A stretch of 64,000 nt of DNA from Zygnema circumcarinatum SAG 698-1b. Its lineage: Eukaryota; Plantae; Zygnematophyceae. A model generated the notes under the pieces. That model ran no database searches. It saw nothing but the letters and a program-made list of their open reading frames with translations, and was not told where the DNA came from. Positions 15,122 through 47,908 of this stretch are shown one piece after another. A program made the position numbers and the translations under genes. Numbering within the stretch: position 1 is the stretch's first letter; each line of letters begins with the position of its first letter. The stretch is taken from contig CM074818.1 of the NCBI GenBank assembly GCA_037447605.1, forward strand, positions 186,001 to 250,000, given 5' to 3'.

Positions 15122-18100
15122 ATGGCCGAGGAAGCAATGGCTGGTCTTAATCATGCAGGCGTTGCAAATGCAGCTGCTGGATTTGGTGAGCGTGCAGGCC
15201 TCAAAATCGCTGCTGCAAGATCTACAAGATCTGACAGGAAACCTGTGCTTGAACCTTCAAACAACGAAGCGTCTAATGGCACAAGCCCTGTCTTGAGAGA
15301 CTTGGATTTTGCAGCGGAGGAAGTAGAGAGAGAAGGTAGAGAGCGCGATGCAGACGGTCGGGCGAGAGAAGGAAAAGAGGCGGCAGTATGGGAGCTGTCC
15401 TTGGTGGCAAGGCAGCAAGACAGGGAGGCGGAAGCGCGAGGGTGGGAAACTGTCGAAGCCATGGATAGAAAGAGGGCCTCTTTTGACATTGATAAAATCG
15501 AAGAAGAGGTTGAGCGAGAAGGGGCTTTGGAGGATCTGCGACGGCGGATAAAGGATGAGAGAGCGGCGTTTGCAGCAGAGCTTGAAAGGAGGAATACTGC
15601 ATTCGCAAGGAAGGAGGCGGACCACCAAGACACACTCCAGCTCTTGCGGGGTCGTGTTAGAGACCTGGAAACGGTGAAAGCAGTAGGTGCTCCATTCTCT
15701 GAAAATGCTGCAGGGAAGGAGGCTTCCAAGGAGGTAGAAAGGCTAATCAAGGATCTGGAAGAGCAGGTCCAGGAGGCGAATGAACAGAGAGAGAAGGAGA
15801 GAATGCGCAGAGAAGCTGCCGTCATTTCAAAGGAGAGCGCCGAGGAAGCCGTTCGCCTTTACAAGAAGAGCATGCATGAATTACAAGCAGAGATGCGCAA
15901 GAAGGAGATGGAGCTAAACCAGGAGCACGAGGAGACAAAAGCCGAATTAGAGATGGAGGTGATGCACTTGACAGAGGTGTTGGAAGAGAGAAATGCCGAA
16001 TTGAGTGAAGAGAAAGAAAGGGCAGCGCAAGCGGGAGAAATAGCGGAGGACGCCATGAAGCTGTATCGCAAGGCGGAGGAGGACAAGGCGAGCATTCAAC
16101 ATTTTGAAGCGGAAGTGCAAGCACTTCGAGAGAGGTTAGCGGAGGAGGAAGAGAAATTGAGAGAAGAGAGGATGGCAGTCAAAGATAGAGAAGAAGAGAT
16201 GGTGCGAGCGTTAGAGGCATTGGAGCAGCAGATTTTAGCCAGTTCGTTAGACCCAAAAGAAGGCAGGGGAAATGAGATGCAGTTTAAGATAGAGATTGAG
16301 CGACTTAAAGCGGAGAAGAATATGTTGGTTCAGGAGAAGCAGAAGTATGAGGAGGAGCTGAGGGAGGTGCTGAGGCGGGAAGGTGAGCTTGAGACCGATT
16401 TTAACAACAAGGAGCAGAAATGGTCTGATAGAATAAGTGAGCTGGAAACAGATAAAGAGGAGGTCACACGGTTTTATGAGGAATGGAAGACAAAGTCTGA
16501 AGAAGAATTTGGCAGCATGAAACATGAAGCCTCAGCACGAAGGCGAGAGTGGCAAGCAGAGAGGAAGCGTCTGGAAGATGCGTTACGGGAGAGAGATAGA
16601 GAGCATGAGCTCCAGAAAAGGGAATGGCAAGAGGAGCTTGCTGAAGGAGAGGCAAGGCTGAAGACTCTTCTCTCTGAGAGGAGAGAATTGGAGGACGAAT
16701 TCGAAAAGCAGGAACTACGGGCAGAGATGGCTGAACGTCAGCTTCTACGGCGAGAACAGAATTGGTCAGAACAAGAGAAACAGCATCTGGAGGAGATAAA
16801 CAATTTAAGGACAGAAAAGAACAAAATCTCGGCTGAGATCCGAGAAGCTTCTCAGTCGTATGAAAAGGTGAGCGAAGAGCTTAATAAAATGGAAGAAGAC
16901 ATAGTACGTCAGAGGGGTTCTTTTGAGCAGCAGAGAGCGGAATGGATGGAAACTGAAAGGGCCCTCCTCATAGTGAATGCTCAGCAGCAGCAGCGATTAC
17001 AACGGGTTACAGATGAGCTTGCATTGCAAGAAAAGCGAGCGGGCGATTTGGCAGGAGAGCTGCTATCTCTACAACTGGAAGGACAGGACACCGGTAAGAA
17101 AATCAATGAGCTGAAAATGCAACTGGAAGAGAGGGAAAAAGAGATCAGGGAAGAGAGGGAAAAATCAGCAAAAGAATTGGAGCTGAAAATGGTGTTGGAA
17201 GAAAAGCTGCAGCGAAGATCTAAGGATGTTGAACGGTTGGAAGGGGATTTAAGCAGGCTCAACGGGGGCGGCCAACTGCAAGGTGCAAAGGGAGATGGAG
17301 GTTCAAAAGTGATGCAGAGTTCTTTGAACGCTCAGGTTGCGAGTGTGATGCAGGAATTGAAACTGAAGGAAGAACAAGTGGAAGAGCTAGAAAAGGAGTT
17401 GGGAAGATCTGGCAAAGAATTGGGGTCGTTGAAGGAAGTGGTAGCAATCAAGGAGAGAGAAGTGGAGAAATTGAGGAAGGAAGCCATAGAAGCGGAGAAA
17501 TTAAGGCGGGAAATGTCAGAGAAAGAGCGTGAAGGATGGAAGTTGCTGAGGGACATGGAGGATAAGGAAAGGGAAGTGAGCGCACTGCAGGAGCAGCTGG
17601 CGGCAAAAGCAGAGAGGGAAGAGAACCTCACTGGCGATTTGCAAATCGCGGAAAGACAGGTTGAGCGAGCTAACGTTGAATTATTGGAGAAAGAGCAGCA
17701 GTTCGTGGAGTTAAAGGAGGAACTAATGAATCTGTACTTGGTCAATGAAAATTTGAAAGCGGAAGGACGGACTGTGTGGGAAGAAGCGCAGGATGCAGTA
17801 GGACGCTTGAAAGAGGAGTTGAAGGCAGCTGAGATGAAGGAGCAAGCACGAGGACAGGAGTACGATGAGCAGAGGCGCTTAGAGATGGAAGAGAGGCTCA
17901 GGGAGGATGAGGAGAGGCAGCGGGAGGGCATCGAGTATGATCTTATCAGCACAGAGGTAAATGTGCTGAGGGTAGATATGGACACTCAGCATCATGAATT
18001 GGTATTGGTCAGGGAGGCGCTGCAGGTGAAGGAGGGCCAACTCAGTGAAAAGATTGAGCAACTTGGAGTGGCCGAAAACGATTTGAACCAAACTAGTGAG

Positions 18101-21100
18101 AATTTACAGAGGGCTCATGGGGAGTTGGATAGGCTAAGAGAAGATGTCAAAAAATTTAATGAGGAAATTGCATCCGTAAGGCAGGCTGAGAAGCTGGAGA
18201 GGGACGCAAAGGAAATAGCTTTGAAAGAAGCAGAGGCTTTGAAAGAACTAGTAAGGGAAACTGCCGAAGGTGAGAAAAAGCTGCAGGTGAAGGTGAAAGA
18301 GTTGCAGAGTGACTTGGGGGCAGCTAAAGAACGAGCAGATACAGCAGAGCAAACTGTATTGATGAAAATGGACGATCTTCGGAAGTCGCTTGAGGATGTT
18401 GAACGGCTGGAGCAGGACGGCGCACAGAAAACGAATTCCCTGTTGAAGGAGAGAGAGGCACGAGCAGCTGCCGAGGCTGAGGTGAGTCGGTTGACAGGCT
18501 TGGTAGCGCGACTGACTCAAGACGTGGGCCGTTTTCAAGAGCGCTTAGAGCAGTCACATCGTGAGATAGGCGAAAAGTTGAAAAACATGGAGGAGTTGAA
18601 CAAAGTCCTTGTCAAACTGTCAGAGGACACAGATAGACTTGAGAGGGAGCTTTCAACAACGCAAGCTGTTATCGTGGAAGAGCGCAAGTTGAAAGAAAAT
18701 GCTGAAGTCAAAGTTGAAAAACTGGAGGGTGAGCTGAAGAATGAAAAGCGGAGTAGGCAAATTCTGCAGACGCAGGCGAGTGAGTTTCAGCAGAAGGTGG
18801 TCGAGGCAGAAAAGAGTAATCTTGAGGTGAAAGCCGTTTGTGCTGCTCTAGAGAAAAACTTGGAAGCCGCTGTAGCGCAAGTAGAAGAGGGCAGCAAGAG
18901 GATCAAGGAATGGGAAGTCAAGTACGCTACACAGAAGGCGGAATATCAGGATCAGATAGATCAGCTGGTGGAGCAGCTGGAAAAAGTGAAGCAAGGAAAC
19001 GTCGTATCGGTGAGAAATGCAACGGAGCTTCAGGGTGATTTAAACGAAATGAGAGCAAGAGCTGAGGCTGCAGAGAAAGCTCTCATTGCGGAACAGCATA
19101 ATTGTCAAAGGGCTATGGACGAAACAAAGCAGCTGGAATTGAAGCTGCAGGAGTATAGTGTAGCCCGAGAGGAATACTTGAGACAAGAAGAGCAGGCACA
19201 GAAGACCATTGCTGCTATGAAGGAGGAATTGGCAGCACTTATTCTGGAGCTTAATCGTATCAAGGAAAAGGAGCGGGCATTGGAAGGACTGATGGCGAAG
19301 GAGAGGGGTGAGAGAGAGGAGGAGCGGGCAACGTTGCAATTGCAGTTGAAAGAGTATGAGATGACCAAGCAAGGGCTGGTAGACAGTCAGGCTAAGGAGA
19401 TGGAAGCTTTGAGGAAGAGAATAGAAGAGCAGTCCAATGAAATAGAAAAAGGGCAGAAATTTAGAGCGAAGACTTCCAAGGAATTAGAGGAGCTGAAGGT
19501 CAATGCAGGGAAGAACCTGGAAGTTGTCCAGAAGTGCTCCAGTCTTGAGAAAGAGTTAGATGAGGCTAGGAAGTCAACAGCAAAGGCCGCCGAAATGGCA
19601 GCCACGAATGAGAAAAAGCTTCGTGAGCAATTGAAGAAGGCGACTGATGAATTGAAGAAGATAAGGCAGTCACGGGAGGCCGACCAAGCTAAGTTGCAGG
19701 ATGCATATAAGGCCATGGAGACTCTAAAGTTACAAGCTGTAAATGCGGAAAATGCCCTCGCGAAGAAGGGTGAGGAGTCGAAGATTGCGTTACGTCAGCT
19801 GGATGACTTCAAGAAGGAGAGGGAAGTGGAGCTGAAGTCGGAATCAATTAAGAAGGCGGAGTTGGAGCAGCGATTAGCGGAACTTGAGAAGCATCTTGCT
19901 GGAAAAACGCTCTTGGAACGAGATGCAAGCGAACAATTAGAGAAGGCAAAGAAAGAGTTAATGGAGACTAAGGAATCGGCATTGAGGGCTGCACAAACGG
20001 CAGTCATGTCTGAGCAAAAGCTCACTGAAAGGCTGAAAATGGCCTCGGAGGAAGTGAAGAAGATAAAGCAGGCATGGAAAACCGATGAGGAGAAGCTGCA
20101 GGATGGCAGTAAGGCTCTGGAGGCCATAAAAAGACAAGCTCTGAACACAGAGAAGGCCCTCGCTGAGAAGGCTGAGGAGTTGGAGATCACGTCAGGTCAG
20201 CTAGAGGAAATCAGAAAGCACACCAAAGAGAGGGAAGAGGAGGCGAAGATGGGGTTGGAAAAGAAGGCAGAGTTGGAGCGGCGGTTGAAGGATCTTGAGC
20301 AGAAGCTGGCAGGAGAAGCTGTAGCGAAGCAGGATGCAAGTCAGGAAACAGAGAAGGCAAAGATGGAAGCCGTAAAGGTAGCAGGTGCAGCGGTACAGTT
20401 GGAGGAGGAGATTCAGATGGAAAAGAAGAAGAATGCTGAGCTTTGGAGGACATTGGTTGAGTCTAGAGAAGAGATCAAGTGCTTAAAAGATGCTGACGCC
20501 AGTTTAGGGCAGAAATGCGATCAGCTCCAATCCGAGCTTGCATCAACAGATGTAAGGTGTAGAGAAGCGGAGAATAAGCTCGTCGTTATAGAAAATTTGC
20601 TAGAAGAAGCAAGGAAGGAGGTAGGGAAGATCAGAGAAGAAGCAGAACTACAATTGCAGGAAAGAAATAAGGCTGAGAATGAAGCGAAGGAGTTGGGGAT
20701 CCGAACGGCGGATCTGCAATTGAGATTCGATGTTATGCGGGCTGAGAGAGATGAAGCTCACAAGGAAGCCCAATCTGTTGCCAGAGCGAAAGTGAAGTTA
20801 GAGGAGGAGGTGAAAAGGAGGCGGACAGAAGTTGAGAAGCTTCAGTCAGAAGTAAAGGACGTAAAGCTGGAACTCTCATCGTTGAAGGAAAGTGGTGCAA
20901 AGGTGAGAATGGAATTGGCGGACGTAAAGAGCAGGGCAGCGAACGTTGAGCTTTCTTTGAAGGCGAAAGAGAAAGAGCTTGCAGGTGTAGCAATTGAAGT
21001 GAGCAATCTGAGGGCAGAGAAAAAGAGTCGAGTGGAGGAGGCTCTCAGAGAGAGAGGGGCGAAAGAGGAGACTAAGCGACACTTGCAAGAAGTGCAGAAT

Positions 21101-24100
21101 CAAGTTAGTCAGCTCGCTGAGGATCAAGAGCAGGCGGAGCAGGAAATTTCTGAGTTAAGGCAGCGATGTGCATCTGGAGAGAAGGCATTTGAAGAAAGGA
21201 GTGGCGAAATGAAGGTACTTCAAACTCAGTTCGAGGGCCTCCTTCGAGAAAAGAAGCAGCTGCAATCTGAATTGAGTACAGCTGAGAGGAGGATAAAAGA
21301 GGCCACAGAAGCAGGTGAGAAGTTACAGACTCAGGTTGAGGTTGCTACAGTTGATCTGCGTACGAAAACAGACAAATACATAATGGAGCAGAAAGTAAAG
21401 GATGCTGAAATCGAAAAGCTGAGGGATGAAGTAGAGAAGTTGAAAGAGGAGCTGGCAGCTTTGACAAAGGCCTTGGAGGACGAAACGACTGAGAAACACA
21501 AGGCAGTGAAAGAAGCACGTCATGAGGTTGAACGTCTGCGGGTTGAGCTTGGAGGAAAAGTTGAAGAGACTGACGAGATTCAGAAAGAAGCAACGCGTCA
21601 AGTAGTGAATGCGACGCAGGAAATGGAGAAATTCAGAAAGGAGCTGACCATCCGGTTGACTATGCTGGAGGAGGAGAAACTAGGGAGGCAGGCGGCAGAG
21701 GCAGAGAAGGTAGCTGTTAAGAGGATGCTCGAAAAGACCAATGAGATACTGGACGGAAAGGAGACGGAGCTCTGGAAAGTAAAGAAGGAGATTGGGAGTG
21801 CTCAAAGGGAAATGGATGACCTTCGAAGTGCGGTGGAAGACCTGGAGAAGTCGGGAAGGAGCAAAGAAAAGCAGTTACTGGAAAAGAGAGAGGAGCTCAT
21901 TATGGTGAGGCAGGAGTTAGAAAGTGTGAAACAGGAATTGAGAGATGCTAGAGAACGGATAGTACAGCAGACGGAAGCCCTCCATCTCCGAGGAAAGGAG
22001 GTGGCTAAGAAGGAGGAACAGCTTGCAGATGTATTGCAGAAGGAGCAGAGTTTGAACTTACAGCATATGCGGAAGGCAAAGGAACTCGAAGAAATGAAGC
22101 ACAGCAATGAACAGTTGGAAATGGAATTGGCGAAGATGAAGAGTGCGCTTGCGGGAGAAGTTGGAACCGTGAAAGAGAGGCTTTCCCAATTTTCGGAAGA
22201 ATTAGAGAAGAGGTCGAGGGAGTGCCTGCAAGAGCGGAATATGAGGGAGGATCTGGAAAAGGAGAGGGATGCCCTGCAATTGGAGAAGGTCGATTTGCAG
22301 AAAGAACTGTCCGTTCTAGAAGAGAAGATGGAAAAATTGGAAGATGAAGTATTGGATCTTCACGATGATCTGCAGAGCAAGCAGGCGGCAATTGAGGAAC
22401 TGGAAGCAGAGGCAAAGAGGCTGCGAAGTCAAGAGCAGAAGTTATTGGAAGAGATAGAGACTCAGGAGGCTGCTAAGAAGGCAGTAGAGAGTGAATTAGC
22501 AACTGAAATAGACGAACTGAATGTACAGCTGGCAGACAGTGATGGGGAGTTGCAAGCCTTACGAGAAGATTACAACACATCGCGTTCCCGTTTTGAAGAA
22601 GAGGTGGAAAAGCTGAAGGAGCTGCTTCGAGTGAGGGAAAGTGATATCAACGAGGCGCGGCAAGAGGTGCAAATGGCTTTAGAGAAGGTGGTTGAAGGAG
22701 AGGAAAAGAGAGGGGCATTGGAAGGGGAGCAAGTAGAACTGAACTCTATGCTTGAGAATATGCACAATGAATTATCAGACACGGCAGCTGCTCTCAGAGA
22801 GATGACAAGTGAGGTTGAACAGTTGCGAGGAAAGAACGCAGACTTAACTTCTCAGCTGAATGCACTAATGGAGGAGGCCACTAGGCGGAAAGGAGAAGAG
22901 GACGAGGCTAACTCTGTCATTCGGCAATCCAAAGACGATGTAAAAAGGTTGGAGAGGGAGTGCACAGCACTTCAGAAGAAGGTCGAAGTTGCTGAGCAGG
23001 ATATTGTGACAAAGAATCAGGAGACTTCAAATCTGCAACGGGTGAATGCTGAACTCCGAGGAAAGGTGAGAGCGCTTGAAGGAGCCAAAGCATCAGCTGA
23101 AACGACTTTGGCTGGACTCTTGGAGGAGATTGAGAAGGTCAAAAATTTCAACAACAGGAAAGCCGAGGAAGAAAGTGGAAATAGCGGCAAGTTAACCACA
23201 GAGATCGAACGGCTGCAGCAGGAAGTAGCTGCCAAGGAGTGGGAGAGGAAAGCAGCTAGAGAGGACTCTCAGAAGAATGAGGCCAAGGCATCGAAGGCTG
23301 AGACAGACAGAGAGAGGCTAAGAGTTGCTTTGAGTCAGGCAGAGGAAAGGATGGCTGAGAAGGAGGCAAGTGTGCAGAGTAAGGATAGAGAGATTGATGC
23401 GTTGCAGATGGCAATGAGGGCGAGGGAAGCAGCTGCCGAAGGGGCACTTGATGAAGAACAGAGAGCAGGAGCTACCACTATCAATCAGCTGAGGACGGAC
23501 TTGGCACGGGCAGAACGTTCTGCTCAGGAAAGTAAGAGTCAATTGAGCAGCACACAGGTAAGTTTGGCACATTCGCAGAAGAGAATCTCAGAGATGCAGG
23601 AGGATTTGGCAAAAGCATGGGCAGAGATGGCGGCCATGAGAAGTCAGATGGGGGAGATGATGACAAGTGGAACAAAGCTGGAGGTTTTAGTGAGGGAGAA
23701 GGAAGGACAGCTGCAGCGGGAGAGGGCATTGAGAGTTCAGGAGGTGGAAGAGAGGGAGAAGACATGGGCGAGGAAGCTGGAGGATAGGGAGAGAGTTGAT
23801 GCGCAGGAGAGAGAGACTCTTCAGGAGGAAGTTGAGCGACTCTTAAATAGGGAAAGAGAAGAGTATGCGAGTTTGTTGAACCAGGAGAGGCAGAATATGT
23901 TCAGAGGGAAGGAGTTGGAGCAGCAACAGTGGAGGGAGAGGGAGATGGAATTTCTGAAAAAGGTTCAGGAGTTAGGAGTTCAGCTTCAAGCAATGCAAGT
24001 TCGGCTGCAAGACTTGAGCGCAAAGGAACAGGCATGGCAGCAGCAGGAGAAGGAGTGGGTTCGTCGTATCCGAGACGGAGAGGCGAAGGAGAAGGAGTTG

Positions 24101-27024
24101 ACTGAGAAGGAGGGGAAATTGAAGGCTAAGGAGCAGCAGCTGATGCAGGAGAGGAAGGAACTGCAGGCAAAGAAAGGCGGGGATACAGCCCTTGACAATG
24201 AACAAGCGGCATTCTATGAATCCAGAATCAAAATGCTGGAGGAAAGACTGAATGGAATGGATGGAGAAGAGGAGAAGCTTCAATTCGAACCAGGGCAATT
24301 TGCAGAGCTGGAAGCTCATATTACAAGCATGGAGAGGCAACACAGGGAGGCTTTGGTGAGTCTCATTATCACAGACCGCTGGTGGGAGGTGATGTTGACC
24401 GTATAAATATGGATGTATTTGGAGTATGGCATACATTTAAAAAAACTTCTTAATTAGACAATGTTATGATGATTTTCTTGTGGCCTCCTTGAAAGAAATT
24501 CTCAATCACTTCTGACAATTTAAATGTACTATGTGGGAACAGGAAGTGGCAGCCAAGCGTGGAGAGGAGTTGAAACAGTTAAAGCAAAAGCATCATGAGT
24601 TGGTCGATGCTTTGGAGGCCGAAAAGGCGGCTAGAGATGCAGCTGTCGACTCAATCCTTGCTGAAATCGAACATGAAGACATGATTCAGTAAGCTTTCAC
24701 CTTACCAACAAAGCAATACAGTGGTAGGGTGATAGGGCGATAGGTTGGCAGGGTAGTAAAGAATGCGATGAATCTTAATGCGATGAACAGTCCTTTTCCC
24801 TCAGACCCAATTGTGGGTAAATCCCTCTTATGTCGACGTGATTTTTGCATAGTTTAATTGTGTAAGCTTTTGTGATGTGTGGGATGAAATTTGCAGGAGC
24901 TCCTCGGAAGCAGCCATGGACTGGCATGCCCATGATGCAGAGATGCAATTACTAGGGAGAAAGGCTCGCTCCCTGCTCGGCAGAGATGCAGGGTCTCCCT
25001 CAGGGAGCCCTCTAAAGGCAGAGAAAGGAAGTATGGAGGATATGGGGTTGGTCTCTGTCGGAGAGGAACAAGGGGAAGCCGGAGATCCGTTTTTGGCGCT
25101 TGAAATGTCCAACACGTGAGTTGCATCTTGGGCTTAACGCTTGCGAAGTTTGTTTGTTGGGTTAGGGTCTTTCGGGTTTTAGGGCTTTTTAGTTTAAGTT
25201 TTTAGTGTTTCTAGGGCTTGTAGGGTTTTCGTGCCGGTTTTGGTATGTGTAGAGTGGGGTTGGTTGTCAAACAGAGAGAGGTGTTACAAGGCTGAGGAAA
25301 AGATAGAGGGGAGGGAACAGGGGAAAGGGATGTGGAAGAAGAGAGGGGGAGCCAGAGACTGCTAGCAAAAGGAATGCAGATTTCCTTGTCGTTTTTTATG
25401 TATTGTTTGTTGTATCTTGCTTATTGTCTATTAGTATTTTATGTTGTTCATTTTTTTTTTAGTGAAAAAATATATTATTAGTAGCAAAAGGTATTGAAGG
25501 TATCTCTGGGAATGTATGCGTGAGTTACAGGACGGGAGTGGGAGGGCCCGTGAGGAGGACGCTTGGGATCGGAGCGTGGCTGCCCCATCCGTACCTCACT
25601 TGGTCCGGTCTGACTCGGCGACAGCGTTTCCTAGTTGATAGCACATGGCTGGACCATGTGCGCAAGGTATGCGTCCTCTCTCTCTCTCTCCCTCTCTCTC
25701 TCTCTCTCACACACACACAGACACGCCCCCTCCTTCCTCTCTCTCTCCCAACCCTCGCCTTCTATGTTCTCTGGCACCCCTCGCCTTCCTCTCTCTCCCA
25801 CTCTTCGCTCTCTCCCTTTCATTTTTTATTAGAAGTCGTGAATAGTATAAACATTAATACCACAGCTGTAGCGACCTACTCTGGGTAATGAAGAAGGTGA
25901 TATGTGGTTTGCGAAGCGGCTCAAAACATATCTTGGTTTCCCTTTTTTTTATAAACTGCGTTGAATTTTTTTGGGATGTGGGGCTCTGACTGTGGAGCAG
26001 GAGCATGCGGAGATGAAGCAGGAGGTGGCCATGGCAAGGGAAAGGACCTTAAAACTTGAGCAGGTGGGCCTACTATGTGAATCCATACGAGAGAGAGATT
26101 GGGTGGGGAGAGAGCGGGAATACCATAAAGAGAGAGAGGACGGGAAGTGGGAAGGAATGCCAGACGAGAGAGAAAGAGAGAAACGAGGGAGAGAGAGAGA
26201 ATGCCATACGAGAGTGGTTGGAAGGAAAGTGGGCGAGAGAGTGGGAGGGAAGGGGAGAGAGAGAGGGAGATACGTGGGACAGAGTTAGGGAATGCCAAAC
26301 GAGGAGGGGGGAGGATAGTGGGAGAGAGAGGAGGAATGCCACATGAGAGGGAGGGAGAAAGGTGGGGAGAGAATGCCATGCCATAGGAGAGAGGGAGGAA
26401 GGAGAGGAAGGGGACAGAGAGAGAGGGATGGAGAGAGGTGCAAGGGAATAAGATTTCTTTGAGGGTTCTGAGGTTCTCCGTGCTTTGCTTGTGAATGGGG
26501 GATCGGGAGCAGCTCAAAGACGAGCGAGGCCTCATGGAGGCAGCCGTGGCCCGAGCTGTAGAATACAAACGGCGTTATGAGCTGGAGATTTCCGATCTTC
26601 AAAGGAAGGTGAGCGTTTGCTCGTCACCCGATAAAGCTCCTCTCCCCCCGCCACCCCCCCCCCAATGCCTCCCTCTTACTCTCTCCCTCTCGTTCTCTCC
26701 CCCCACTCCCTCCCTCCCTCTCTCTCGCTCACCCCCATGTTCCCATCTGTCCCTCTCCCTTCCCCCCCCCCGGCCCTGTCCCCCCTCTCGCTCTTCCCCC
26801 ACAATTCCCTTCCCCTCCCCGACTCTCCGTCCCTCTCCCTCTTTTTCTCGTACTCAATTCATGCCTAATGTGTCACGCAGTTGGCCCACTTGGAAGCTTT
26901 CAAAGGAGTGGCGGTGCCTCCTTCCTTTGATGAAGAGGAGGACACGGGAGAGAACCTCCACACCTGGGCGGACGACGTCCCAAGTTCCTCTAAAGGAAAG
27001 AGGACGCCTGCCATGGCAGAGTGA
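15122..27024 (+). CDS. Giant coiled-coil protein of unknown family (~3,345 aa)
   Basis: Exon 1 is 15122-24355 (9,234 nt, 3,078 uninterrupted codons, E/K/L/Q/R/A-rich heptad sequence). Six phase-compatible GT-AG exons follow: 24543-24688, 24897-25115, 25531-25666, 26001-26063, 26513-26608 and 26881-27024 (TGA). An alternative donor at 27021 could instead add a micro-exon 27289-27307 (EMEEAW*). No recognisable globular domain. Confidence 0.88.
26075..26390 (+). repeat. Degenerate intronic minisatellite with core GAATGCCAnACGAGAG
   Basis: About 7 core copies (~26079, 26118, 26155, 26199, 26290, 26334, 26371) separated by GA-rich spacers. Confidence 0.7.
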
Positions 27025-28444
27025 GCTTCAATGCCCAGAGAAATCCCAAGTACTGTCTGTTGACTGAGAACAAGATGGAGGCGGGAGAGGGGAGAGAGAG
27101 TGGGAGAGCGGGAGAGGGAGGGAACGAGGGGAGGGGGAATTGGAGGGGGAGGAGGGGGGTGGGGGGGAAGGGAAGGGGGGAAGGGAGGGGGAGAACACGG
27201 AAATCGCAAACCCCGACAATCTTTTCATGTTTTTTCAAGTTTTTTTTCACTTAAAAGTGCGTGTGGACCACCCCTGGGGGCTTTTCAGGATGGAGGAAGC
27301 GTGGTAGGCAGGAGAGGTGCAGTTTGTAGTTTCCAACGCAGCTGACAACTCGCTGCAGACAGAAGCCGGCAAAGGGCGACCGTGCGCGAGACTGTATATG
27401 GACAGGAAATGCAGAAGTCGCATTTTGATCCTAATGTTTGAAAGCGAGAGAGCGAAGAGAGAGAGATTTTCACGGGATTCAGTGTCGTTGTATTGTACAT
27501 CCATTATTGTCACGGTCATCAGCAGACTCCACCCCCTTCCCTCTGAGGAAGGGGATAGAGAGAGAGAGTCCCTCCCTGGCTTCCTCTAAGGATCCATTAG
27601 GTGAGAGTAGCATCGACTAAGTTCTAGGTCGTGAGGGAGTGAGTGGTGTTGGAGGGGTCTTAAAGGTGAACCATACCTCATGCCATCTTACTTTATTTCA
27701 TGTCTGTGTTTGAATCCAATATCTGAAGTGAAAGCTAGAGAGAGATACACACACACACCACACACACACTCACACACACAGGGAGCGCGAGAGGGATAGA
27801 GAAGAGGGCAGAGAGTGTGCAAGATGTAGACGTCAATTCACTGTACGAAAAGTAGGTAGAGAGCCTTTGTACTTATAAGATGCCAATCTCCTGTTTTTGT
27901 CCCAAATCACATATGAGACACCGTTTTGTAAAACGTGGATGTAGTTTTTTTGAGGTGGGGAGGCTGAGGAAAGAGTTGTATGTTGTATGTATGTTCGTAT
28001 ATATTTCTCATCTTCATTCTTCTCGCTTGTGTAGCAAGGAGGTTTCCTTAGCAAAGGCCTGAAGCCTGTCTGCAATGGACCGCTCTGCACCTCAAAAGGA
28101 CTCTTCCAAAATAAAAAAACAAGTCAGTTAAAACTTAGCTCATAGGCGAAGCGCACCCTTTGACGCTCATGTGCCCGCATGGAAAGCGACGTTTCGACGA
28201 CTCCCACTACCGATGTACAATGCCCATACTACTCTACGCATCATTAGAAAAAATTGTAGAAAAGGTTGTGTTGGTGCGTGTAAAAGAGAGAGAGAGAAGG
28301 GGTGGGGGACGACAGAGGGGGGGATAGGAGAGGTCTAACTTCTTCTTCTTTTGAACGTTACCACCTTTCGAGCTTCCAAAAAATGTTGTACTGTAGTTTC
28401 ACCAGAGGCACCCTTGTCGTACAATGTTCTTAACGGCTATCTAG

Positions 28445-31400
28445 TCACTTTTCGTTGACCTCCGCAGTGATACATTTGGAGCAGCCATGGCTGTGGTAGA
28501 TCCCCAAAAGGCAGGAAGCAAGCTCGTACACTTGGGGACGGTGCGAGACGACAACGTACTGGGCAGAGCTTTGTTCCTGCAGGCATGTCGGTCCACAACA
28601 ACAACAAAAAGAAGAAAAACGATGAACATAATGAACTGTTAGTTCGAACCCCCGAAATTGGGAGAGGCGAGACAACTGCAAGTCTCACTCTTCATGTGTG
28701 TTGTCTGGATTTTGGAGCAGACAAAATTACGTAGCTTTCAGCTCCTAGCTCTTTTTTGTTGTCCTTAGGTCCTGTGCGACCAGTACATCGTGGTTCCCCA
28801 TGATGATTTTGTCCATGTATATTTGATGGCATCGCCATCGTGAGATAAATGACACATCTCCTCCGGTAGATCAATGCCAAATTATTCCCTCGAAGGTTGG
28901 GGGAGCCGCACAGTGCGTGGTGCATACTGCATACCTTCACGTATTGGGCAATTTCGCGCGCGTTAACGGTGTCGAGTGACGCATCGAACTCGTCGAAGAA
29001 GTAGAAGGCAGAGGGGAAGGCAGCCTGCAGCGCGAAGGAGAGCGCTAGAGAAGCCATGGCCTGCTGGCCGCCCGAGAGGGCGCTGAACTGCCTCCACTGC
29101 TGCCTGTCTGGCCGTACTGCAAAACAGTATAATCATTCAACTTTTAGTTTACTATCAAGATTGATAGGAACATCTGGTTCCATCGTTCTGCTTTGCTGCA
29201 TGGAATGCCGGCATGCAGATTAAGGAGTTTGAAGGTCAAGAGTTCACTGTGACTGCTATAAAAGATATCGCAGCATGTATATCACAGCCCATCGCCAAAG
29301 ATTTACCATTCTTAACATTCGACTAGACTTGAGTTGTACCATGGAAGCGTGAGATGAAGTGTTAAGGAGAACAGAAGGCAACACTTAACGAGCTCTTTCT
29401 CTCACCGTGGAAGTAGACGCCATCCGCAAAAAGAAGCGTCTTCTCCTCTGTGTAGCTTATGTATGCATCTCCGTGTTTGGTCAATCGGCGGTATATGTCG
29501 GATAGGTGAGTATTGACCTGCATTTTTTATCGTCCATGTCATCCATTATTAAAGTTGTAACATACTTTATTGAGAAAAAGTAAAATTCCTCTTCCTCCAG
29601 TTTCGATTCTAAGCTTACCTTGGCCATCGAATCGCAGAACTCAGAAAACCTACTCGTCTCCAACTGGTCTTTCTGAAGAGCTGTGCTCTTGATGCTCTCT
29701 TTCATGTCAGAAAGCTTTTGAGTTTCGCAGTTTACTTGCTGGCGGATATTTATGTCGTGCTCCAAGGCCTCGTGATCCACGGACCTGTACTCAATACTTG
29801 AAAAGTTAAGAATCTCAACTCTTTCTTGAAGTTTATTAGAACTGTTCAAATGACCATGTTGGACGGAAAACATAAAACATTGGGACGGGATAGAGTAAAA
29901 GCGAGGAGCAGGTACTGCTTCTGTCAGTTGTGCAGTTTATCCCTCTCCCACCCTAAGTCTCTCTCAGTTTCCCGCTCCGTCACTGCCATTGTGACTCCCA
30001 CTCTCACCCTCACCATCCTTATGCTGACATTCTTCTCTCGTTCTCTATCGTACGCTCTCATTCTCTCTTTCTTGATAACTTTTTTACCTCTCCCTCCGCA
30101 TCCCATTTTTTTTTCTCCCTTTTTTCTGACTCACCTATGTAATTCAGCAAGCGCCACTTCTTGCTGAGCTAACTCCAAACCCTCTCGCTCAAGTTGAGCC
30201 TCGATAGACTCTATATTGTCGGGTCGGACCTCTTGACAGTGTTTTTTTGATGATGAATCATTGTTTAGCTCCAAAAGGAAGTCGGCTACTTTTTGTAACT
30301 TCACCTTTGCTCCCTTCATTTGAGCCTCCAGTTTACCTGTCTCAAGGGCCAGAACTTTCTGGAATCACAGACAGCCAAGTTTGAAAACTTAGGATCCAAC
30401 AGCACTTCAATGTGACAGTGCTTACGCTACTTTTGGCCATTTGTTATATGTAACGATTAGTAATGGTCAATTTTCACATGCTGTACTTTTTCTACTCTCT
30501 ATTGCATACATACATGCAGGGCAGTGCTTGCAAAGCATGGGACCGGAACAACGATATTTTACATACGCAGGCTTCGCTTTGCAAGTAGAACTAACCTTCC
30601 TTGCCGACGTTTTCTCGGACGAAGAGATGAGTTTTTTCCGTTCTGACTGCAACGATGACAACTCACGCCGAGAGTCTTCCAGCTTTTGAGCACTGTAAGC
30701 GAAAAATAACGAGGAGGCAATAAATTTTCTGAAAGCAGGCTAGTCAGAACGAACCCCACAACAATAACGTAGTAGTATTTTTTTTCTCCTTTTTGGAAAA
30801 AACAAAATTAAAAAACAAGCATCTGCCAGTGCCTAGACCGCCATGAAAAATTGTATTTTACCACCTCGAATGCAAAAAAGTGAGTTTGACCTTTGAATAA
30901 AAGTGAGATAAATGCCAGCCCACCTTAAGTCACGAGCCGCGGTCACTTCAGGTATCGTTAAAGTGAGTTCACTCAGTTTTTCATGTATGGCTTCACGTCT
31001 GCCTGAGACAGAGTCTAGTAGCGATTCAATTTTTCTGTCCTCTAAGGTTTCAAGCTCCTTCTGCAGCCAACTTAGCTTGGATCGATTCTCTCCAACCTCC
31101 ATGTTCAGTTGTCGAATCTTCAATTCAAGATCAGAGAGATTTTGGGCATACTCTAACCAGTCTGGATGCCCCACTTGGGGCTGCGTATCTTTCAACTCTG
31201 CTTCTATCTTCGCTTTAACTTTCAACAATTCCTCGAGTTCAGCTTGGGTCTTCTTTGTCTCATTATCTCCACTTGTCCTTATCAGAGTATTTGCCGCCTT
31301 CCTCTTCACCTGCAGCCTAGTCGCTAGCTTGCTTGCCGCTGTTGAATTTCTCCCATTACCCTCCTTTCTCTGAATCTCTCTCTTTAAATCCTCCCCTTTT

Positions 31401-34400
31401 TTTCGCAGTTGAGTAACCGCGGTTTCCTTTGCTTCGATTTCTGCAACAAGATGCTTCATTTCTTCTTCAATTTGTGAAATTCTTTCCATGTGACAAGTTC
31501 GGTCCATATCAGTACCTACATCACTGCTTACATCAGAGGTTTCCCTGCTGCTTTTGGAATCCTGGTTACCTTCCAAAAAATACTTAGCGCTGCTACGGTG
31601 CAAACCTCCTCTTACCACTTCTCCATCCTACAAGACGACAACAGAGAGTTAGATACCTTGAAATTCCTTCAGATGTTCACCAAACGGCAAGAGAGAAACA
31701 GCTGAAACTGCAGTTGTTTCTGACAGAGTAATGAATGCAGCACAAAGAGAAATAGAGACAATATATCTATGCATGGAGCGAGGAAATTGACATTCTTTAG
31801 GCGATACCTGCTTGAACAATTCACCAGCGGGTGTGACAAGGTTGCATATTGCATGCTTCTTTTGGCTTCCATGCACAGAAACAGCCATCTCTCGATTCAA
31901 TACCAGTGTCCATTGTTGGCAGAATTTGGCCAAGGCTGGCTTGAACTTGTCAGAGATGGTGATGCAACTCATTAAGGGCACCATTTGGCTTCCTGCTGAG
32001 ACCGTTGGAGCTGGTGGAACTCGTGTTTCAGCCAGAATCTCACAAGAAACCAACCCTATTCTGTTGACATGAAAATGCCTGATAACGTCATTTGCCGTTT
32101 TCCGATCATCTACCACAAACCTGAACTCAAAAAACATCGGAACGACAAAGATCAAATTTAAAGGTGGGAAGAAGAAAAAATCTTTTGCAAAATCAGTCTT
32201 CTGAATCTCATTCAAATGCCGCAAAAAATATGCATATTTTATTCATATGCCAACCCTCACTGCGAGCGTAAGTAGGTAAGGCATTACTCACGTGGAAGCC
32301 ATATTGGTGGAATTGCTCAATACGGAGTTAACAGCAGTCAGCTGTGGACCAGAAACTGTAGCAACGTCCTTCAATCTCCCGTGAAAACTTCCAGAGTGGC
32401 TTTTTTTGAAATCCCCGCATGCCTTATCATACATTTCGTATCTATCTCGGCTTTTCCTATCCCCACCTTTCAGCAAATCCTTTAATCGCAACACTTCTAC
32501 CTGCAACGTAAAACCAGAAAATCCAAATAAATCCGATTATATATTCTGCAATATCGCTGTCAAGCATTCAAGGGCGAAAGGACCAAGTGATTGTCTCACC
32601 TCAAAATCTGTCAATCTCCTCCTCAAATGCGAATGAATCGATGTCTCAATCACCTCCGACTCACGAAGCACCGTATCAAGTTCTTTCCTTGTTTTTTGAA
32701 TATCCTCATCTTCCTCATTCACAAGAACATGCAGGCGTTCAAGCTCTCCTTGAAGTCTCTCAACCTATTGAATTCCAACTCAATCCCAACCACTGTTCAC
32801 TGTAAATAAGAATGCAAGCACGCAATGACTAGCTAGATTAGTTCTCTCCTAATTTCCGGCATGTCCATTCTAAGTTATCGGAGGCAATCTCATAGTGAAA
32901 GGAGAGGAAATTACCTCTCTTTCAGCCTTTGCAAGTTGATTCAGCTGTTCTTGTCGCCTTTCCTTCACTTGCAACAAAGTTTCCTGCGCCTTCGAAACAA
33001 ATCAGTAACAAAAAATGCCAGAAAGCATAATGTAACAAGATGCAATTTCCGCGCTCATCAACTTAGATTTTTGATCAGGTTGCCTCCAGGGTTGAACTTT
33101 GCTGTTAGATGTCGAGCTTTACCTTGGCTCTTGATATTTTGAGGTCGATTGCAAAATTCCGCTGCTTGATATCCATTAACTTCAAAACCCAGGTGTTGCA
33201 ACTCAACCCATTTTGAATATTCGGATGTCCCGATTTTAGCGCGTCTAGTGTGACCTGATTCTCTTCCCGTTCCGAAATTTTTCTTTTTAGCTTCTCCTGA
33301 AGTTCAACTATCTGCTGTTGCAACCGCTCTCTCCGCATGTTCTGATCCTTTTGCTCTTTCAAAGCAGCTTTCTGGAGTTTCTTTTCCTCCTCCTCAGCTT
33401 CTTTCAATCGGACCTGCTCGTCCGAGGGCTACTATAGTCAGTTTTTTACTTTGACATGAGACATGACCCCTATGTTGGTCAATACAAAACAAAGATGATT
33501 TGAAGTTGATGGATCACACTTGCAGTAGTACGACATGGCGGGCAAAAATTCCTGTCGGGCATTTCCTGAATGGAAGGATTCGACTCCCTACTTGTGCTTT
33601 AATGTGAGAAAGCTGAAGCTGCTCGAGCTTGCCGTTCTGTTGATCCAAACTTTTCGAGTATTCCTCGGTTGTCAGTTTGACGGCCTCAAGCTTGTGTTCT
33701 GTGTTTGCGATCTTCAGCAGTAAAGACTGTTGCAAGTCAAGAAATGGGCTAAACTGCTGCAAATAGATTCACTGTGGGGCCCATAATTGTGCATGTCTCA
33801 AATATTTCAGCAAATGCTTAGTGATTGGATACGTCGAACTTTCGTTCGAGTTTCGATTGCTCCTCCGCCTTGGTATCAAGATCCATTCCTAGAACGGCGA
33901 CTTTTGCCTTTTGAAACTCCGACTGTTTCATGCAGTAAGAGACCTGAAAGCTCCCATTGCTACAATCAGAACACCTTACTCTAAAACACACAAGCAGATC
34001 CGCATCACCGAAAGATATCTGTCTGACCGAACGGCGAAATTTGTCAGAGGCTTGACAAAGGATTACAAAACTGACAACAAGAAGCATTTAATGGATGCAA
34101 CAGCCACATCATTCATTTTTTTCTTGCAGAAGGAAAGTGTTCCAAAGCGAATTCTGGAGATGTTCGCAAAGTCCAGAGACAGGGGAAACACAAACGTTTT
34201 TGCGAAAAAGATGAAAGGGATTACCCGTTTCTCATCAAGACTCTGCTTTTCACTTAAGTACCTGTAGTAGAGCTGGCGAAATTGAGTCAGCTCGTTGGAT
34301 AAACTTGAACAGGTATTACTATAAACGGAAAGTTTAGCAGGTCAAATGTTTTGATAATATTGGGGAAGCGAAAAACAAAGTTAAAGATGTATAGGAGTAC

Positions 34401-36568
34401 CTCTCCCATACAACTACTTTCGGCCGCAGTTCTTCCTTCTGGTGTTCTAGAAGAAGAAGATGGTTTTCTAGACATTCACTTTCTTCCAGAAAGTGCTTTA
34501 GTCGATCGTCTGCATGTCGGATCAGTTCTTCATAATGACCGGTGCCAATCAGCTCCTCAAGGTACTGCAACAGTTTTATTTAGTACATTTGTCATGAGGG
34601 AATTAAGTTGCTCAAGCGAGACATCACTGGCAGGAACATAAAGAAAGAAAATATTCACCAATGGCTGATTTTTGCGACTAAGCGTGAGAGAGAAAAGCAG
34701 AAGCTTGGAAAGCGTTTGAAGTCCTTCTCTACACACAGAGCATGACAGCTGAAATCACTGATAAAAAACGATAGAGGAAGTTGTAAAAGATATATTAAGG
34801 TTACCTTTAAGAGGTTCCTAGGATCCTTTACTTTCACAGCCTGCTGGTTTTGCATTACAATAAACCTGCAATTCCAATGTATGGCAGAAAAGATTTTTTT
34901 TGTGGGATATGTTCTACATCAACAGACGTACAGAAGTCATAAATCTTCAGGCATGCATAAAAGATGCGCTGCTTTACTGGAGTTTGGGAAAGGATTTGAT
35001 TCCAGATTTAGAAGTCTGACCAGTTTCAAACTCAAAACTTGAGGCTTCGCACCTGTCAACTGAAGCAACATGAATTCCAAATCTGTTTAATTCGCCTTTT
35101 ATCGTGGCAATGTTTACAGACCTGCAGTTACGGAACTACTATCAGTTAACTGGTTGCAAAAAGAAAAGCTTGCTCCTGCGAGACATGATACCTAATGAAA
35201 AAGAATACACCTATATCTTACGCCACGCTAATGTAGTGCTTGCAGGAAAAGGAAAACTTCATGATCATGACACCATTGACATAGTATCCTTATCTTCTTC
35301 ACGAAATATTCCTCAGTATATCCCTTACAAATCAATTCTTCTTAAAATTAGTTGAACGAAGAGATAACCTCCTGCATACGTTCAGAACTGGTGGAGCTTC
35401 AGGCTACAAGGTTAAGTTCATTTACAGCCTGTCCCTGCAAAGTGACCTCAGCAGAGTTCACCATCACATCCACCTCCTACCTTTTGCAATCGCTCTGCTT
35501 GAAGAAATACTGACTTCCTTGTTCTGTCAATCTGCGACTTATCTTCAAGTATGTCTGTGTTCCATCAAGATTGTCGACTTGAAATTGGAGTGAGACCTGC
35601 AATGAAGCTTCCTGAAGGAGTCTCAGTTAGACTCTCACAAGAATTCACTTTCAGCATAGTGATTTTTTATCAGAAGGCTGAGCTCTATGAACTAGAGTGC
35701 ATTCAGGCCAAGCCTCCAAATTTCCTGGATGTCTATTTGAATGTCAATAAGAGATTTGTTTATCACATTTTTAATAATGTGATCATGCAACGATATCCTC
35801 ACCTTTGCCTCCCTTTCCGAGGCTGCCATTGCACCCGTCGTCAACTCCTCGTTAATGAGAGCCGCACCACTCCTTGCTCGCATGGTTCGCGTTGATCCCC
35901 CGAGAGCAAAAGCTATTGCCTCGCCAATGACCTGTTTTATTCGAGCAGCTGGTCAAGGACGGGCTATTTTTCATCAATATTTTCCTCGTGACAGCTTTAT
36001 GTATGGATTGAATTGCAGGTTGGACGAAAATATAAGGCCATTATTCATACAAGAAAAGAAGACGAGTTCTGGCAGCAGCATGACAAGAAAAGGATACGCT
36101 TTTCCCTGAGCCATTGCTTCCAATAATACACGTGAAGCTTGTCAAAGGGCCTACAGAAACCTTCTCTCGATAGCTTTTGAAGCCTTTTATGCTAATCTTA
36201 GACAATGTTATCTTGCTCTGCGGGATCAATGTACAGGCATCCATGTTGTCAGCATGCACATCATTTGGATGCTGCATTTCCTGATTACCGCTTATTTGCG
36301 TGTGCAAACCTCTTGGATGTGTTTGGAACTCATCCTGTCTGTGATTGCGGCTCACATTGACTTCGTTCTGGGCCTTCCTGTGCAAGTCAGAAGGTTTAAT
36401 TTCATAACTGCTTTGTGTTTTTCCCTCGACGTACAAAGCTTCCGACTGCTGATGATTATCTAGTTGTCTTCCAATAAGAACAGGATCCTTTGCATGTAAG
36501 GAATGCTCATCTTCACTGCTGTCACTGTCTTGGAGAATCAACCTCCTACGTTTCTTTCTTATCAGCAT
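28445..36568 (-). CDS. Divergent SMC-family ATPase, SMC4-like (roughly 1,300-1,400 aa by manual exon count, ~21 exons)
   Basis: N-terminal head: IKGFKSYREKVSVGPLTSFTCIIGSNGSGKS (Walker A ~36098-36121), Q-loop RFIVMQ, YLEELIGTGHYEELI. Then a coiled coil, a hinge (GSFHGRLKDV...FVVDDRKTANDVIRHF...GELFKQDGEVVRGG) and a second coiled coil. C-terminal head: IYRRLTKHGDAY...DGVYFHVRP...W..LSGGQQAMASLALSFALQ...FYFFDEFDASLD...YVK...QYVVVSHRPQVYELASCLLGIY...SKCIT, colinear with SMC4 as I recall it. Stop at 28445. The start ATG at 36568 is tentative. Confidence 0.88.
28731..28880 (+). repeat. Dispersed repeat fragment in the last intron of the SMC gene, homologous to one arm of the fold-back at 49.5-49.9 kb
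   Basis: Shares cttaggtcct(g/t)tgcgaccagt...cgtggttcc...catgta.atttgatggc.tcgccatcgtgag...tcaatgcca with 49512-49635. Confidence 0.8.

Positions 36569-39367: not shown

Positions 39368-47908
<8,541 letters not shown>

Follow-up and report, generated by a model that had tools for sequence, protein, structure and literature searches.

Six SMC proteins in four complexes make up the textbook inventory of eukaryotic SMCs, and the SMC1/SMC4 type is the class in which a kleisin attaches by its C-terminal winged helix to the head cap. The same count is given in two recent eukaryote-wide surveys (PMC8665677; bioRxiv 10.1101/2024.01.07.573240), in which the SMC4-like family reported here is not described. 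We also found no paper in the literature that treats its members as a family. Extra SMC4-type proteins beside the housekeeping SMC4 are on record, DPY-27 in Caenorhabditis elegans and SMC4-2 in Paramecium (PMC5373644 and PMC10700549), which makes a specialised complex plausible here as well. Both are young duplicates nested in the SMC4 of their own lineage, whereas the green family is old, is not nested, and is found in chlorophytes and in streptophytes up to conifers.

The gene in Zygnema circumcarinatum probably codes for a complete SMC ATPase that appears to be catalytically competent and represents a distinct lineage of the SMC1/SMC4 type, one that seems not to have been described before. 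The closest described protein, SMC4 (CAP-C/Cut3; condensins I and II), shares the head-coil-hinge-coil-head layout and likewise has an N-terminal extension before the head; its head exit YLEDIIGT resembles YLEELIGT of the Zygnema protein, and it is the best PDB match both of the family profile and of the Zygnema C-head exon. Prokaryotic SMC (SMC-ScpAB) shares with the family the domain order and the histidine of the H-loop (VSHK/ITHR), but the family is placed within the eukaryotic SMCs and its signature is LSGGQQ, not LSGGEK/ER. SMC1 (cohesin) is the second-best profile match, but the SMC1 motifs that we compared (LSGGEKT and ISLK) are missing from the family.

Gene structure of the Zygnema locus

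The window is a stretch of 64,000 nucleotides from contig CM074818.1 of strain SAG 698-1b. The gene lies on its minus strand and runs from its ATG at 36568 to its TGA at 28447-28445, in agreement with the limits (28445-36568) given in the first-pass annotation. Joined, the 21 exons give a reading frame of 1311 codons; each intron of the chain is GT-AG, and there is no frameshift and no internal stop, so the earlier description of an intact head-coil-hinge-coil-head gene holds. The exon chain was built from homology and splice-site consensus, not from RNA, and it is uncertain at exons 7-9, 11 and 12 in the coiled coil, in the choice of the start ATG and as to whether exon 1 contains an intron. 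The features of the model are as follows (a slash marks an exon boundary):

36098-36568, minus: exon 1, aa 1-157; N-terminal extension of ~119 aa (MLIRKKRRRL...), then the start of the N-head; Pfam SMC_N 2.4e-8, family HMM positions 3-42 (E 1.5e-15)
36121-36098, minus: Walker A GSNGSGKS in exon 1; donor AGC/GTATCC
36355-36218, minus: possible intron within exon 1, uncertain, as is the start ATG
35803-35931, minus: exon 2, aa 158-200; family-specific flank VIGEAIAFALGG and arginine-finger region MRARS; family HMM 40-80 (E 1.2e-11), acceptor aaacag/GTC, donor AAG/gtgagg, motif table
35481-35596, minus: exon 3, aa 201-238; N-head beta strands; weak family HMM match 79-108 (E 0.098), ttgcag/ and AAG/gtagga
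35053-35121, minus: exon 4, aa 239-261; N-head; weak family HMM match 111-134, tblastn with Diphasiastrum P0003, splice sites
34805-34865, minus: exon 5, aa 262-282; Q-loop FIVMQNQQ; tblastn 73% identity to P0003, family HMM E 2.2e-5
34401-34564, minus: exon 6, aa 283-336; head exit YLEELIGT and start of arm 1; family HMM 151-212 (E 1.3e-11)
32600-34261, minus: exons 7-12, coiled-coil arm 1 (34261-34225, 33922-33833, 33726-33592, 33413-33123, 32983-32915, 32764-32600); open frames with GT-AG sites picked by a dynamic programme on codon usage and splice scores, boundaries least certain; the only family HMM match, at 33416-33213, is weak
32292-32500, minus: exon 13, aa 600-668; end of arm 1 and hinge start FHGRLKDVATV; family HMM 466-540 (E 1e-11)
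31808-32120, minus: exon 14, aa 669-773; hinge core; Pfam SMC_hinge 1.2e-5, family HMM 541-653 (E 1.4e-27)
30924-31627, minus: exon 15, aa 774-1007; hinge end DGEVVRGG and arm 2; family HMM 654-856 (E 2.6e-13), ttgtag/ and AAG/gtgggc
30135-30692, minus: exons 16-17, arm 2 (30692-30596, 30358-30135); weak family HMM matches, GT-AG sites
29619-29784, minus: exon 18, aa 1115-1170; end of arm 2 and C-head entry; family HMM 1011-1067 (E 2.4e-11)
29406-29517, minus: exon 19, aa 1171-1207; C-head GDAYISYTEEKTLLFADGVYFH; family HMM E 4.5e-20
28935-29116, minus: exon 20, aa 1208-1268; signature LSGGQQ (29078-29061), Walker B and D-loop FYFFDEFDASLD; Pfam SMC_N 3.3e-14, family HMM E 2.6e-39, best PDB match SMC4 (9e-12)
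28445-28576, minus: exon 21, aa 1269-1311 and TGA; H-loop VVVSHRPQ (28555-28532); family HMM E 4e-20, motif table

Fifteen minus-strand ORF pieces of the window match the family HMM in colinear order over profile positions 3-1206, and with E-values of exons down to 2.6e-39 this colinearity with the family is far beyond chance. A green-family HMM built without the Zygnema protein scores it at 840 bits. By Pfam, SMC_N is present in the first two and the last two coding pieces, and SMC_hinge lies at 31652-32242 (E 1.2e-5). Membership of the SMC superfamily is seen in the model from two ABC-type head halves, in which Walker A, Q-loop, signature, Walker B, D-loop and H-loop can all be located, and from a hinge between two long arms of similar length (~330 aa and ~340 aa, the exons of arm 1 coming from prediction). 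The residues needed for an ATPase are all kept: the Walker A lysine, the arginine finger, the Q-loop glutamine, the signature serine, the Walker B Asp-Glu, the D-loop and the H-loop histidine.

Motifs and distribution of the SMC4-like family

All five SMC4 hallmarks (GKSNxIDA, FLILQGEVE, LSGGEKT, IISLRNN and the hinge G-x6-G-x3-GG) differ in the Zygnema protein and in its family. The family has GKSVxGE where SMC4 has GKSNxxD, QN(R/Q)QA in the Q-loop where SMC4 has QGEVE, LSGGQQA where SMC4 has LSGGEKT, and VSH(R/K)PQ where SMC4 has ISLRNN, and the GG pair of the hinge is lost in most members. Four departures had been claimed for the Zygnema protein alone, and each was found again in the joined frame: a Walker A flank other than KSNxxDA (GSNGSGKS-VIGEAIAFALGG, aa 150-169), the signature LSGGQQ (aa 1221-1226), the H-loop VVVSHRPQ (aa 1276-1283) and a divergent hinge reading GELFKQDGEVVRGG (aa 768-781). 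They are common to the whole family (GKS-V-x-G-E, LSGGQQ, VVSH(R/K)PQ and, in most members, a hinge without the GG pair). The derived motifs of the family (GKS-V-x-G-E-A, LSGGQQ, SH(R/K)PQ and the Q-loop QN(R/Q)Q) are all present in the Zygnema protein, which keeps 46 of the 48 invariant and 35 of the 39 near-invariant family columns.

Family members were collected from streptophyte and chlorophyte algae, a lycophyte, ferns and conifers (Diphasiastrum, Cryptomeria, Taxus, two Adiantum, Klebsormidium, Mesostigma, Volvox, Chlorella, Trebouxia, Myrmecia, Elliptochloris and Nannochloris); the distribution survey turned up none in angiosperms or bryophytes. The family is set apart by a score cliff: with Diphasiastrum P0003 as query its members score 227-590 bits, followed by SMC4 (137), SMC1A (123) and cyanobacterial SMC (108). 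Five species (Myrmecia, Trebouxia C0004, Chlorella vulgaris, Adiantum nelumboides and Cryptomeria) hold a canonical SMC4 beside the family member, so the family is not a divergent ortholog of SMC4 but a paralog, as the first-pass annotation had proposed. Its caveat that such genes may already carry annotations was also justified, since the orthologs are named 'hypothetical', 'SMC', 'SMC4' or 'condensin subunit' in the databases. Fragments with family motifs also occur in Amoeba proteus (LSGGQK and VSHRPQ) and Gefionella (LSGGQQ), which suggests, from these short sequences, an older and patchy family.

Possible partners and transcription

Like other SMCs, the Zygnema protein would fold back on itself and dimerise through its hinge, and it would engage the head of a partner on ATP, with a kleisin bridging the two, so that DNA could be held or extruded. 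The hinge GG pair has been lost in most members, and the Walker A flank, the Q-loop and the signature are changed as well, which suggests a dedicated partner rather than promiscuous pairing. With an SMC2-like partner the protein would form an extra condensin-like complex. No kleisin was found, and none of the neighbours of the Zygnema gene is informative. We consider it unlikely that the protein instead pairs with ordinary SMC2 in a variant condensin, or forms a homodimer like prokaryotic SMC, with no dedicated partner or separate complex. There is a precedent in DPY-27, which pairs with the shared MIX-1/SMC2 (PMC5373644), and the H-loop histidine is held in common with homodimeric bacterial SMC, but the motifs of hinge and heads are changed family-wide, as for a co-evolved interface.

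Transcription was seen on the strand opposite to the SMC gene:

29152-31906, plus: antisense transcription across the 3' half of the SMC gene; contigs of four runs from three studies
30695-31408, plus: antisense intron (GTAAGC...TTTTTTTCGCAG); GT-AG joint in four of four runs, sites checked in the sequence

In the contigs of this region the SMC introns are read through without splicing, and the ORFs of the spliced antisense RNA reach at most 105 aa. In the same four runs (three studies) no sense-strand splice joint of the SMC gene was seen in the contigs, and none of them covers 31990-35789, the 5' half of the gene. These observations would fit a silent or decaying relic, whose frame is kept without expression and is overridden by antisense transcription. 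Such a relic is quite improbable, however, given 1311 codons in 21 exons with no stop or frameshift and the near-complete retention of the family-invariant residues. Moreover, 10-14% of the words sampled from the 5' half recur in five further runs (a word match without positions), and rare transcripts are dropped by contigs.

Phylogenetic position and significance

The family does not fall within the clade of canonical SMC4. In trees that took in no SMC2, SMC3, SMC5 or SMC6 sequences the family forms a clade at 100/100, and SMC4 forms a clade at 100/99 without it (three trees); the green-lineage family clade, including the Zygnema protein, has 99-100% support. The SMC4 clade that excludes the family includes the SMC4s of nematodes, ciliates and fornicates. 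A mixture-model tree gives a trichotomy of SMC1, SMC4 and the family, with similarly long stems for SMC1 and the family, and a sister relation that joins the family and SMC4 in one clade is not rejected (p-AU 0.156). The family stem measures 2.37 changes per site, so long-branch effects may exaggerate the depth of the family.

Compared with proteins in the PDB, the family profile scores SMC4 best (337 bits, full length), followed by SMC1 (279), SMC3 (192), SMC2 (181) and SMC5/6 (<65), and the earlier choice of SMC4 as the closest known family thus stands by profile score. The SMC4 HMM gives the Zygnema protein 303 bits, below SMC1 (489) and cyanobacterial SMC (365), and the SMC1 profile gives it 102 bits.

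The first-pass annotation had seen in the gene a fast-evolving, lineage-specific copy of SMC4 comparable to DPY-27, and this part of it is not supported. A recent green-lineage SMC4 duplicate, in the manner of DPY-27 or Paramecium SMC4-2 and with its depth a long-branch artefact, would agree with the top profile score for SMC4, the long stem and the unrejected joint clade, but we regard it as very improbable. A tree in which the green family is forced to group with SMC4 of the green lineage is worse by 386 log-likelihood units (p-AU 1.9e-145), and the nematode proteins E_P0215 and E_P0217 fall inside the SMC4 clade while the family stays outside. The family is old, with conserved motifs of its own, its tree approximates the species tree from chlorophytes to conifers, and sequences with the same motifs exist in Amoeba proteus and Gefionella. 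That a bacterial-type SMC came in with the cyanobacterial endosymbiont or through horizontal transfer and serves organelle nucleoids is hardly credible: the H-loop VVSH(R/K)PQ does keep the bacterial histidine (cyanobacterial SMC has VVSHKGP) and most members come from photosynthetic organisms, but the family sits inside the eukaryotic SMC1/SMC4 clade with 99-100% support, grouping with cyanobacterial SMC is rejected (p-AU 0.00025), look-alikes are found in the heterotrophs Amoeba and Gefionella, and the N-terminus, which on direct reading has a basic cluster and then an acidic stretch rich in Ser, does not resemble a transit peptide.

As a separate SMC1/SMC4-type lineage, the family hints at one more SMC complex than the textbooks list. 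Tentatively, and with some doubt, this might be a fifth eukaryotic SMC complex, condensin-like, with its own SMC4-type and SMC2-type subunits and perhaps a CAP-D2-like HEAT subunit. It would be common to Viridiplantae, Amoebozoa and malawimonads, possibly present already in the last eukaryotic common ancestor, and lost in animals, fungi, bryophytes and flowering plants; it may have been overlooked since surveys dropped its members as long branches.

If the conservation from green algae to conifers, the coexistence with normal SMC4 and the SMC2-like match of similar range all hold, a seventh SMC lineage would reopen the inventory of eukaryotic SMCs. Reconstructions of the origin of SMC1-4 would then change. 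The family keeps the prokaryote-type histidine of the H-loop and splits three ways with SMC1 and SMC4. The family is amenable to tests in the tractable Chlorella and Volvox, and in ferns like Ceratopteris if they carry it. Such a lineage would point to a way of handling chromosomes that has been given up in flowering plants, animals and fungi.

Structure and motifs of the window gene

The SMC4-like ATPase gene of the window is a eukaryotic multi-exon gene on the minus strand (36568 to 28445), with Pfam domains as listed here.

Pfam matches in coding pieces of the window gene
First two coding pieces, minus strand: SMC_N (stop-free pieces)
31652-32242, minus strand: SMC_hinge (stop-free piece)
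28935-29132, minus strand: SMC_N (E 3.3e-14)
28448-28684, minus strand: SMC_N

A family HMM (built from 14 related proteins) is colinear with 15 minus-strand pieces of the gene over profile positions 3-1206, with a lowest exon E-value of 2.6e-39, so the SMC resemblance is real and spans the whole protein. The gene model was obtained with a dynamic programme over codon usage, GT/AG scores and HMM matches, its basis being homology and splice sites, and a few junctions were adjusted manually against the family alignment (exon 1 donor; exon 3 acceptor; exon 10 and exon 12 donors). It has 21 exons and 1311 codons, all introns are GT-AG, and there are no frameshifts and no internal stops. The first-pass annotation had called the gene intact, and the homology-based model agrees: the exons join into one open frame, whose ATG start and TGA end coincide with the bounds named there. 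Exons 1-6, 10 and 13-21 are supported by the family, and exons 7-9, 11 and 12 (coiled-coil arm 1) only by an open frame and consensus splice sites. Where translation starts, and whether the N-terminal extension contains an intron (36355-36218), is uncertain. A model from codon usage alone left out conserved head exons and was rejected in favour of the homology-weighted one, and a GA-rich 93-nt pseudo-exon (30044-29952), to which nothing in the family profile corresponds, was removed. The two coiled-coil arms of the model are of near-equal length (∼330 and ∼340 residues), as required by SMC fold-back.

All four motif departures from canonical SMC4 (the ordinary condensin subunit) that were noticed at first pass, at the Walker A flank, signature, H-loop and hinge, are correct in the gene model, and the Q-loop departs as well.

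Motifs of the window protein and its family, followed by those of canonical SMC4
Walker A flank: GSNGSGKS-VIGEAIAFALGG; GKSNxIDA
Q-loop: FIVMQNQQ; FLILQGEVE
Signature: LSGGQQ; LSGGEKT
H-loop: VVVSHRPQ; IISLRNN
Hinge: GELFKQDGEVVRGG; G-x6-G-x3-GG

These departures are conserved family-wide and are not peculiar to one gene. The window protein retains 46 of the 48 invariant and 35 of the 39 near-invariant family columns, and reaches 840 bits with a family HMM from which it was left out. None of the catalytic residues that an ABC-type SMC head needs is missing from it, so that, as far as sequence goes, there is no argument against ATPase activity. As modelled, the window protein has every part of an SMC, its ATPase motifs are intact, and the family to which it belongs is conserved and of SMC1/SMC4 type.

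Members of the SMC4-like family and its place among SMC proteins

A library-wide phmmer search with the exon of the C-terminal head gave about 80 proteins below E 1e-10 (60-75% identity), 61 of which have LSGGQQ; next below them comes canonical SMC4 with LSGGEK (∼50% identity). A search with the lycophyte protein of Diphasiastrum (P0003) ranks family members at 227-590 bits, and below them comes a cliff (SMC4 137, SMC1A 123 and cyanobacterial SMC 108 bits).

Members of the SMC4-like family in the green lineage
Streptophyte algae: Klebsormidium nitens, Mesostigma viride
Lycophyte: Diphasiastrum complanatum
Ferns: Adiantum capillus-veneris, A. nelumboides
Conifers: Cryptomeria japonica, Taxus chinensis
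Chlorophytes: Volvox reticuliferus, three Chlorella species, several Trebouxia, Myrmecia bisecta, Elliptochloris bilobata, Nannochloris

Of the groups in which the first-pass annotation had wished to see the gene surveyed, streptophyte and chlorophyte algae thus hold members, and bryophytes gave no match in the same collection. No angiosperm protein is among the matches either, though the collection contains many angiosperm and bryophyte proteomes, which is not proof of loss. A profile search with the family alignment was dominated by bacterial SMC candidates, added Taxus alone and was uninformative on distribution. The ESM Atlas returned generic SMC clusters only, and the neighbours of family genes on two contigs include no SMC, kleisin or HEAT gene.

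With a green-algal canonical SMC4 as query, normal SMC4 proteins are found at 1170-1330 bits and ∼50% identity across the green lineage. A family member and a normal SMC4 occur together in five species (Myrmecia bisecta, Trebouxia sp. C0004, Chlorella vulgaris, Adiantum nelumboides and Cryptomeria japonica), which bears out the earlier proposal of a separate paralog. Judged by these five species, the family is a paralog and not an SMC4 ortholog; in the Zygnema genome, read in the window only, the window gene is probably not the only SMC4.

Phylogenetic analyses set the family apart. In an IQ-TREE tree (LG+G4; 53 sequences, 875 columns) it forms a clade (100/100) outside that of canonical SMC4 (100/99), and an independently aligned FastTree tree of 89 sequences agrees, with two nematode proteins (E_P0215 and E_P0217) falling within SMC4. 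The family, long-stemmed, is sister to SMC1+SMC4 within the eukaryotic clade of the 53-sequence tree, a placement among trees that sample SMC1 sparsely and leave out SMC2, SMC3, SMC5 and SMC6. A site-heterogeneous tree (LG+C20+F+G4; 28 sequences, doubtful long branches excluded) leaves SMC1, SMC4 and the family as a trichotomy, with stem lengths of 2.2, 0.6 and 2.4, respectively. In AU tests, one clade of the family and SMC4 is not rejected (p 0.156), and one clade of the green family and green-lineage SMC4 is (p 1.9e-145). The first-pass picture of a fast-evolving private copy of SMC4 is therefore replaced by a conserved family outside the SMC4 clade; branching within canonical SMC4, which would have spoken against a paralog, is seen in neither the 53- nor the 89-sequence tree. 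Bacterial import is rejected by the position inside the eukaryotic clade and by the AU test of grouping with cyanobacterial SMC (p 0.00025).

Against all PDB chains, through which alone SMC2, SMC3, SMC5 and SMC6 enter the comparison, the family profile scores highest with SMC4 (337 and 336 bits), followed by SMC1 (253-279), SMC3 (149-192), SMC2 (148-181) and SMC5/6 (under 65), which assigns the family to the SMC1/SMC4 type with SMC4 nearest. Against the SMC4 profile, the window protein (303 bits) scores below cyanobacterial SMC (365) and SMC1 (489). We consider it highly likely that the SMC4-like family exists as a distinct family.

Outside the green lineage, some sequences join the family in trees of the full length (100/100) and of the C-terminal head alone (99%): those of Gefionella okellyi (a malawimonad), the EukProt transcript 'Hpha', unnamed Logan and JGI contigs and an Amoeba proteus fragment. 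All score higher with the family HMM than with the SMC4 HMM. The Amoeba proteus fragment has LSGGQK and VSHRPQ, and others have LSGGQQ but SLR, so that motif support for the link is partial. These groupings suggest, tentatively given the long branches, that the family is old and patchily retained beyond the green lineage; a very old, near-LECA origin seems rather unlikely.

Transcription and other features of the window

In RNA-assembly-like runs, 33-48% of the words sampled from 28445-34445 are present. Contigs on 29790-35789 from four runs (three studies) extend only to 31906, and one reaches back to ∼29152; they are unspliced through the SMC introns. A joint of 30694 to 31409 is present in contigs of all four runs, and its ends are a canonical plus-strand donor and acceptor (GTAAGC...TTTTTTTCGCAG; intron 30695-31408); the unspliced form occurs too. 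This spliced plus-strand RNA (29152-31906; longest ORF 105 aa) overlaps the last seven exons of the window gene in antisense orientation, and may be a regulatory antisense RNA or a long 3' extension of an upstream plus-strand gene. Over 29790-35789 the four runs contain no sense-strand joints of the window gene, and no contigs on its 5' half; five other runs (two studies) contain 10-14% of the sampled words of that half, perhaps low-level sense mRNA. The intact frame and the conserved residues argue against decay of the gene.

Other features of the window
12441-13061, minus strand: exon of another ATPase gene, with an ABC-type nucleotide-binding domain (ABC_tran, 7.7e-5)
15122-24406, plus strand: single uninterrupted ORF of 3094 aa, E/K/R/A/L-rich, coiled-coil-like
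26131-26372: GA-rich tandem repeats (period about 44/89 bp), downstream of the 3094-aa ORF
26495-27067, plus strand: Pro/Ser-rich ORF of 190 aa, after the GA-rich repeats
40131-40790, minus strand: exon with an AAA+ lid domain (2.6e-7), of an ATPase gene distinct from the ABC-type one
54571-56358, minus strand: LTR retrotransposon fragments (RT RNase H, integrase zinc-binding and gag domains)
50-64 kb: GC of 0.52-0.58 (about 0.45 elsewhere), housing the retrotransposon fragments

The 3094-aa ORF has no Pfam match, and its intronless 9.3-kb exon is unusual beside the intron-rich SMC gene. It accounts for the strong plus-strand purine skew over 14-24 kb (GC skew about +0.4).

Earlier records of the family and a proposed complex

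Neither of two eukaryote-wide surveys goes beyond six SMC subfamilies (PMC8665677; bioRxiv 10.1101/2024.01.07.573240). The second counts one SMC4 and one SMC2 in Klebsormidium nitens, a count that does not cover the family member this alga carries, and one SMC4 and four SMC2 in Gefionella okellyi. It also set aside 'suspiciously long-branch' sequences of the SMC4 clade (CHOSPE007074, APISPI047452/3 and LENLIM003237) and, likewise, long-branch SMC2 candidates (supplementary tables 1 and 2 of bioRxiv 10.1101/2024.01.07.573240). Surveyors have probably seen SMC4-like proteins and discarded them; the discarded sequences and the extra SMC2 of Gefionella okellyi may be further members of SMC4-like and SMC2-like families.

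The first-pass annotation had allowed that the gene may already be annotated in algal genomes, and relatives are, under inconsistent names ('hypothetical protein', 'Structural maintenance of chromosomes 4' and 'nuclear condensin complex subunit'). For example, the Trebouxia sp. A1-2 member is named 'Structural maintenance of chromosomes 4', and that of Chlorella sorokiniana 'nuclear condensin complex subunit isoform A'. The Klebsormidium nitens model, which lacks the N-terminal head, is called 'Putative acetylglucosaminyltransferase EXT1' (clearly wrong). The misnamed family records are the database proteins P0157, P0160 and P0161. Literature on a third condensin, a new SMC complex or SMC4-like/SMC2-like paralogs yielded nematode, ciliate and unrelated cases only; two candidate relatives were rejected, Chlamydomonas 'SMC7' (a coiled-coil pyrenoid protein only) and the 'divergent SMC' of ocean metagenomes (a hinge-less actinobacterial protein). 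The SMC4-like family is apparently an undescribed SMC family.

SMC proteins fold back on themselves, dimerise through their hinges, engage their heads on ATP and bind a kleisin, and the mechanism proposed here is modelled on this behaviour. The window protein would fold back along its own coiled coil, its hinge would dimerise with that of a second SMC, and its head would engage the partner head around two ATP, while its head cap would bind a kleisin at the C-terminal winged helix of the latter. DNA would be held or extruded by the ring or clamp so formed. The changes seen across the family at the hinge (where the GG pair is lost), Walker A flank, Q-loop and signature fit a dedicated partner that has co-evolved with the family. 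We tentatively suggest the SMC2-like family as that partner: a dedicated complex of the two is a serious possibility, if somewhat short of an even one.
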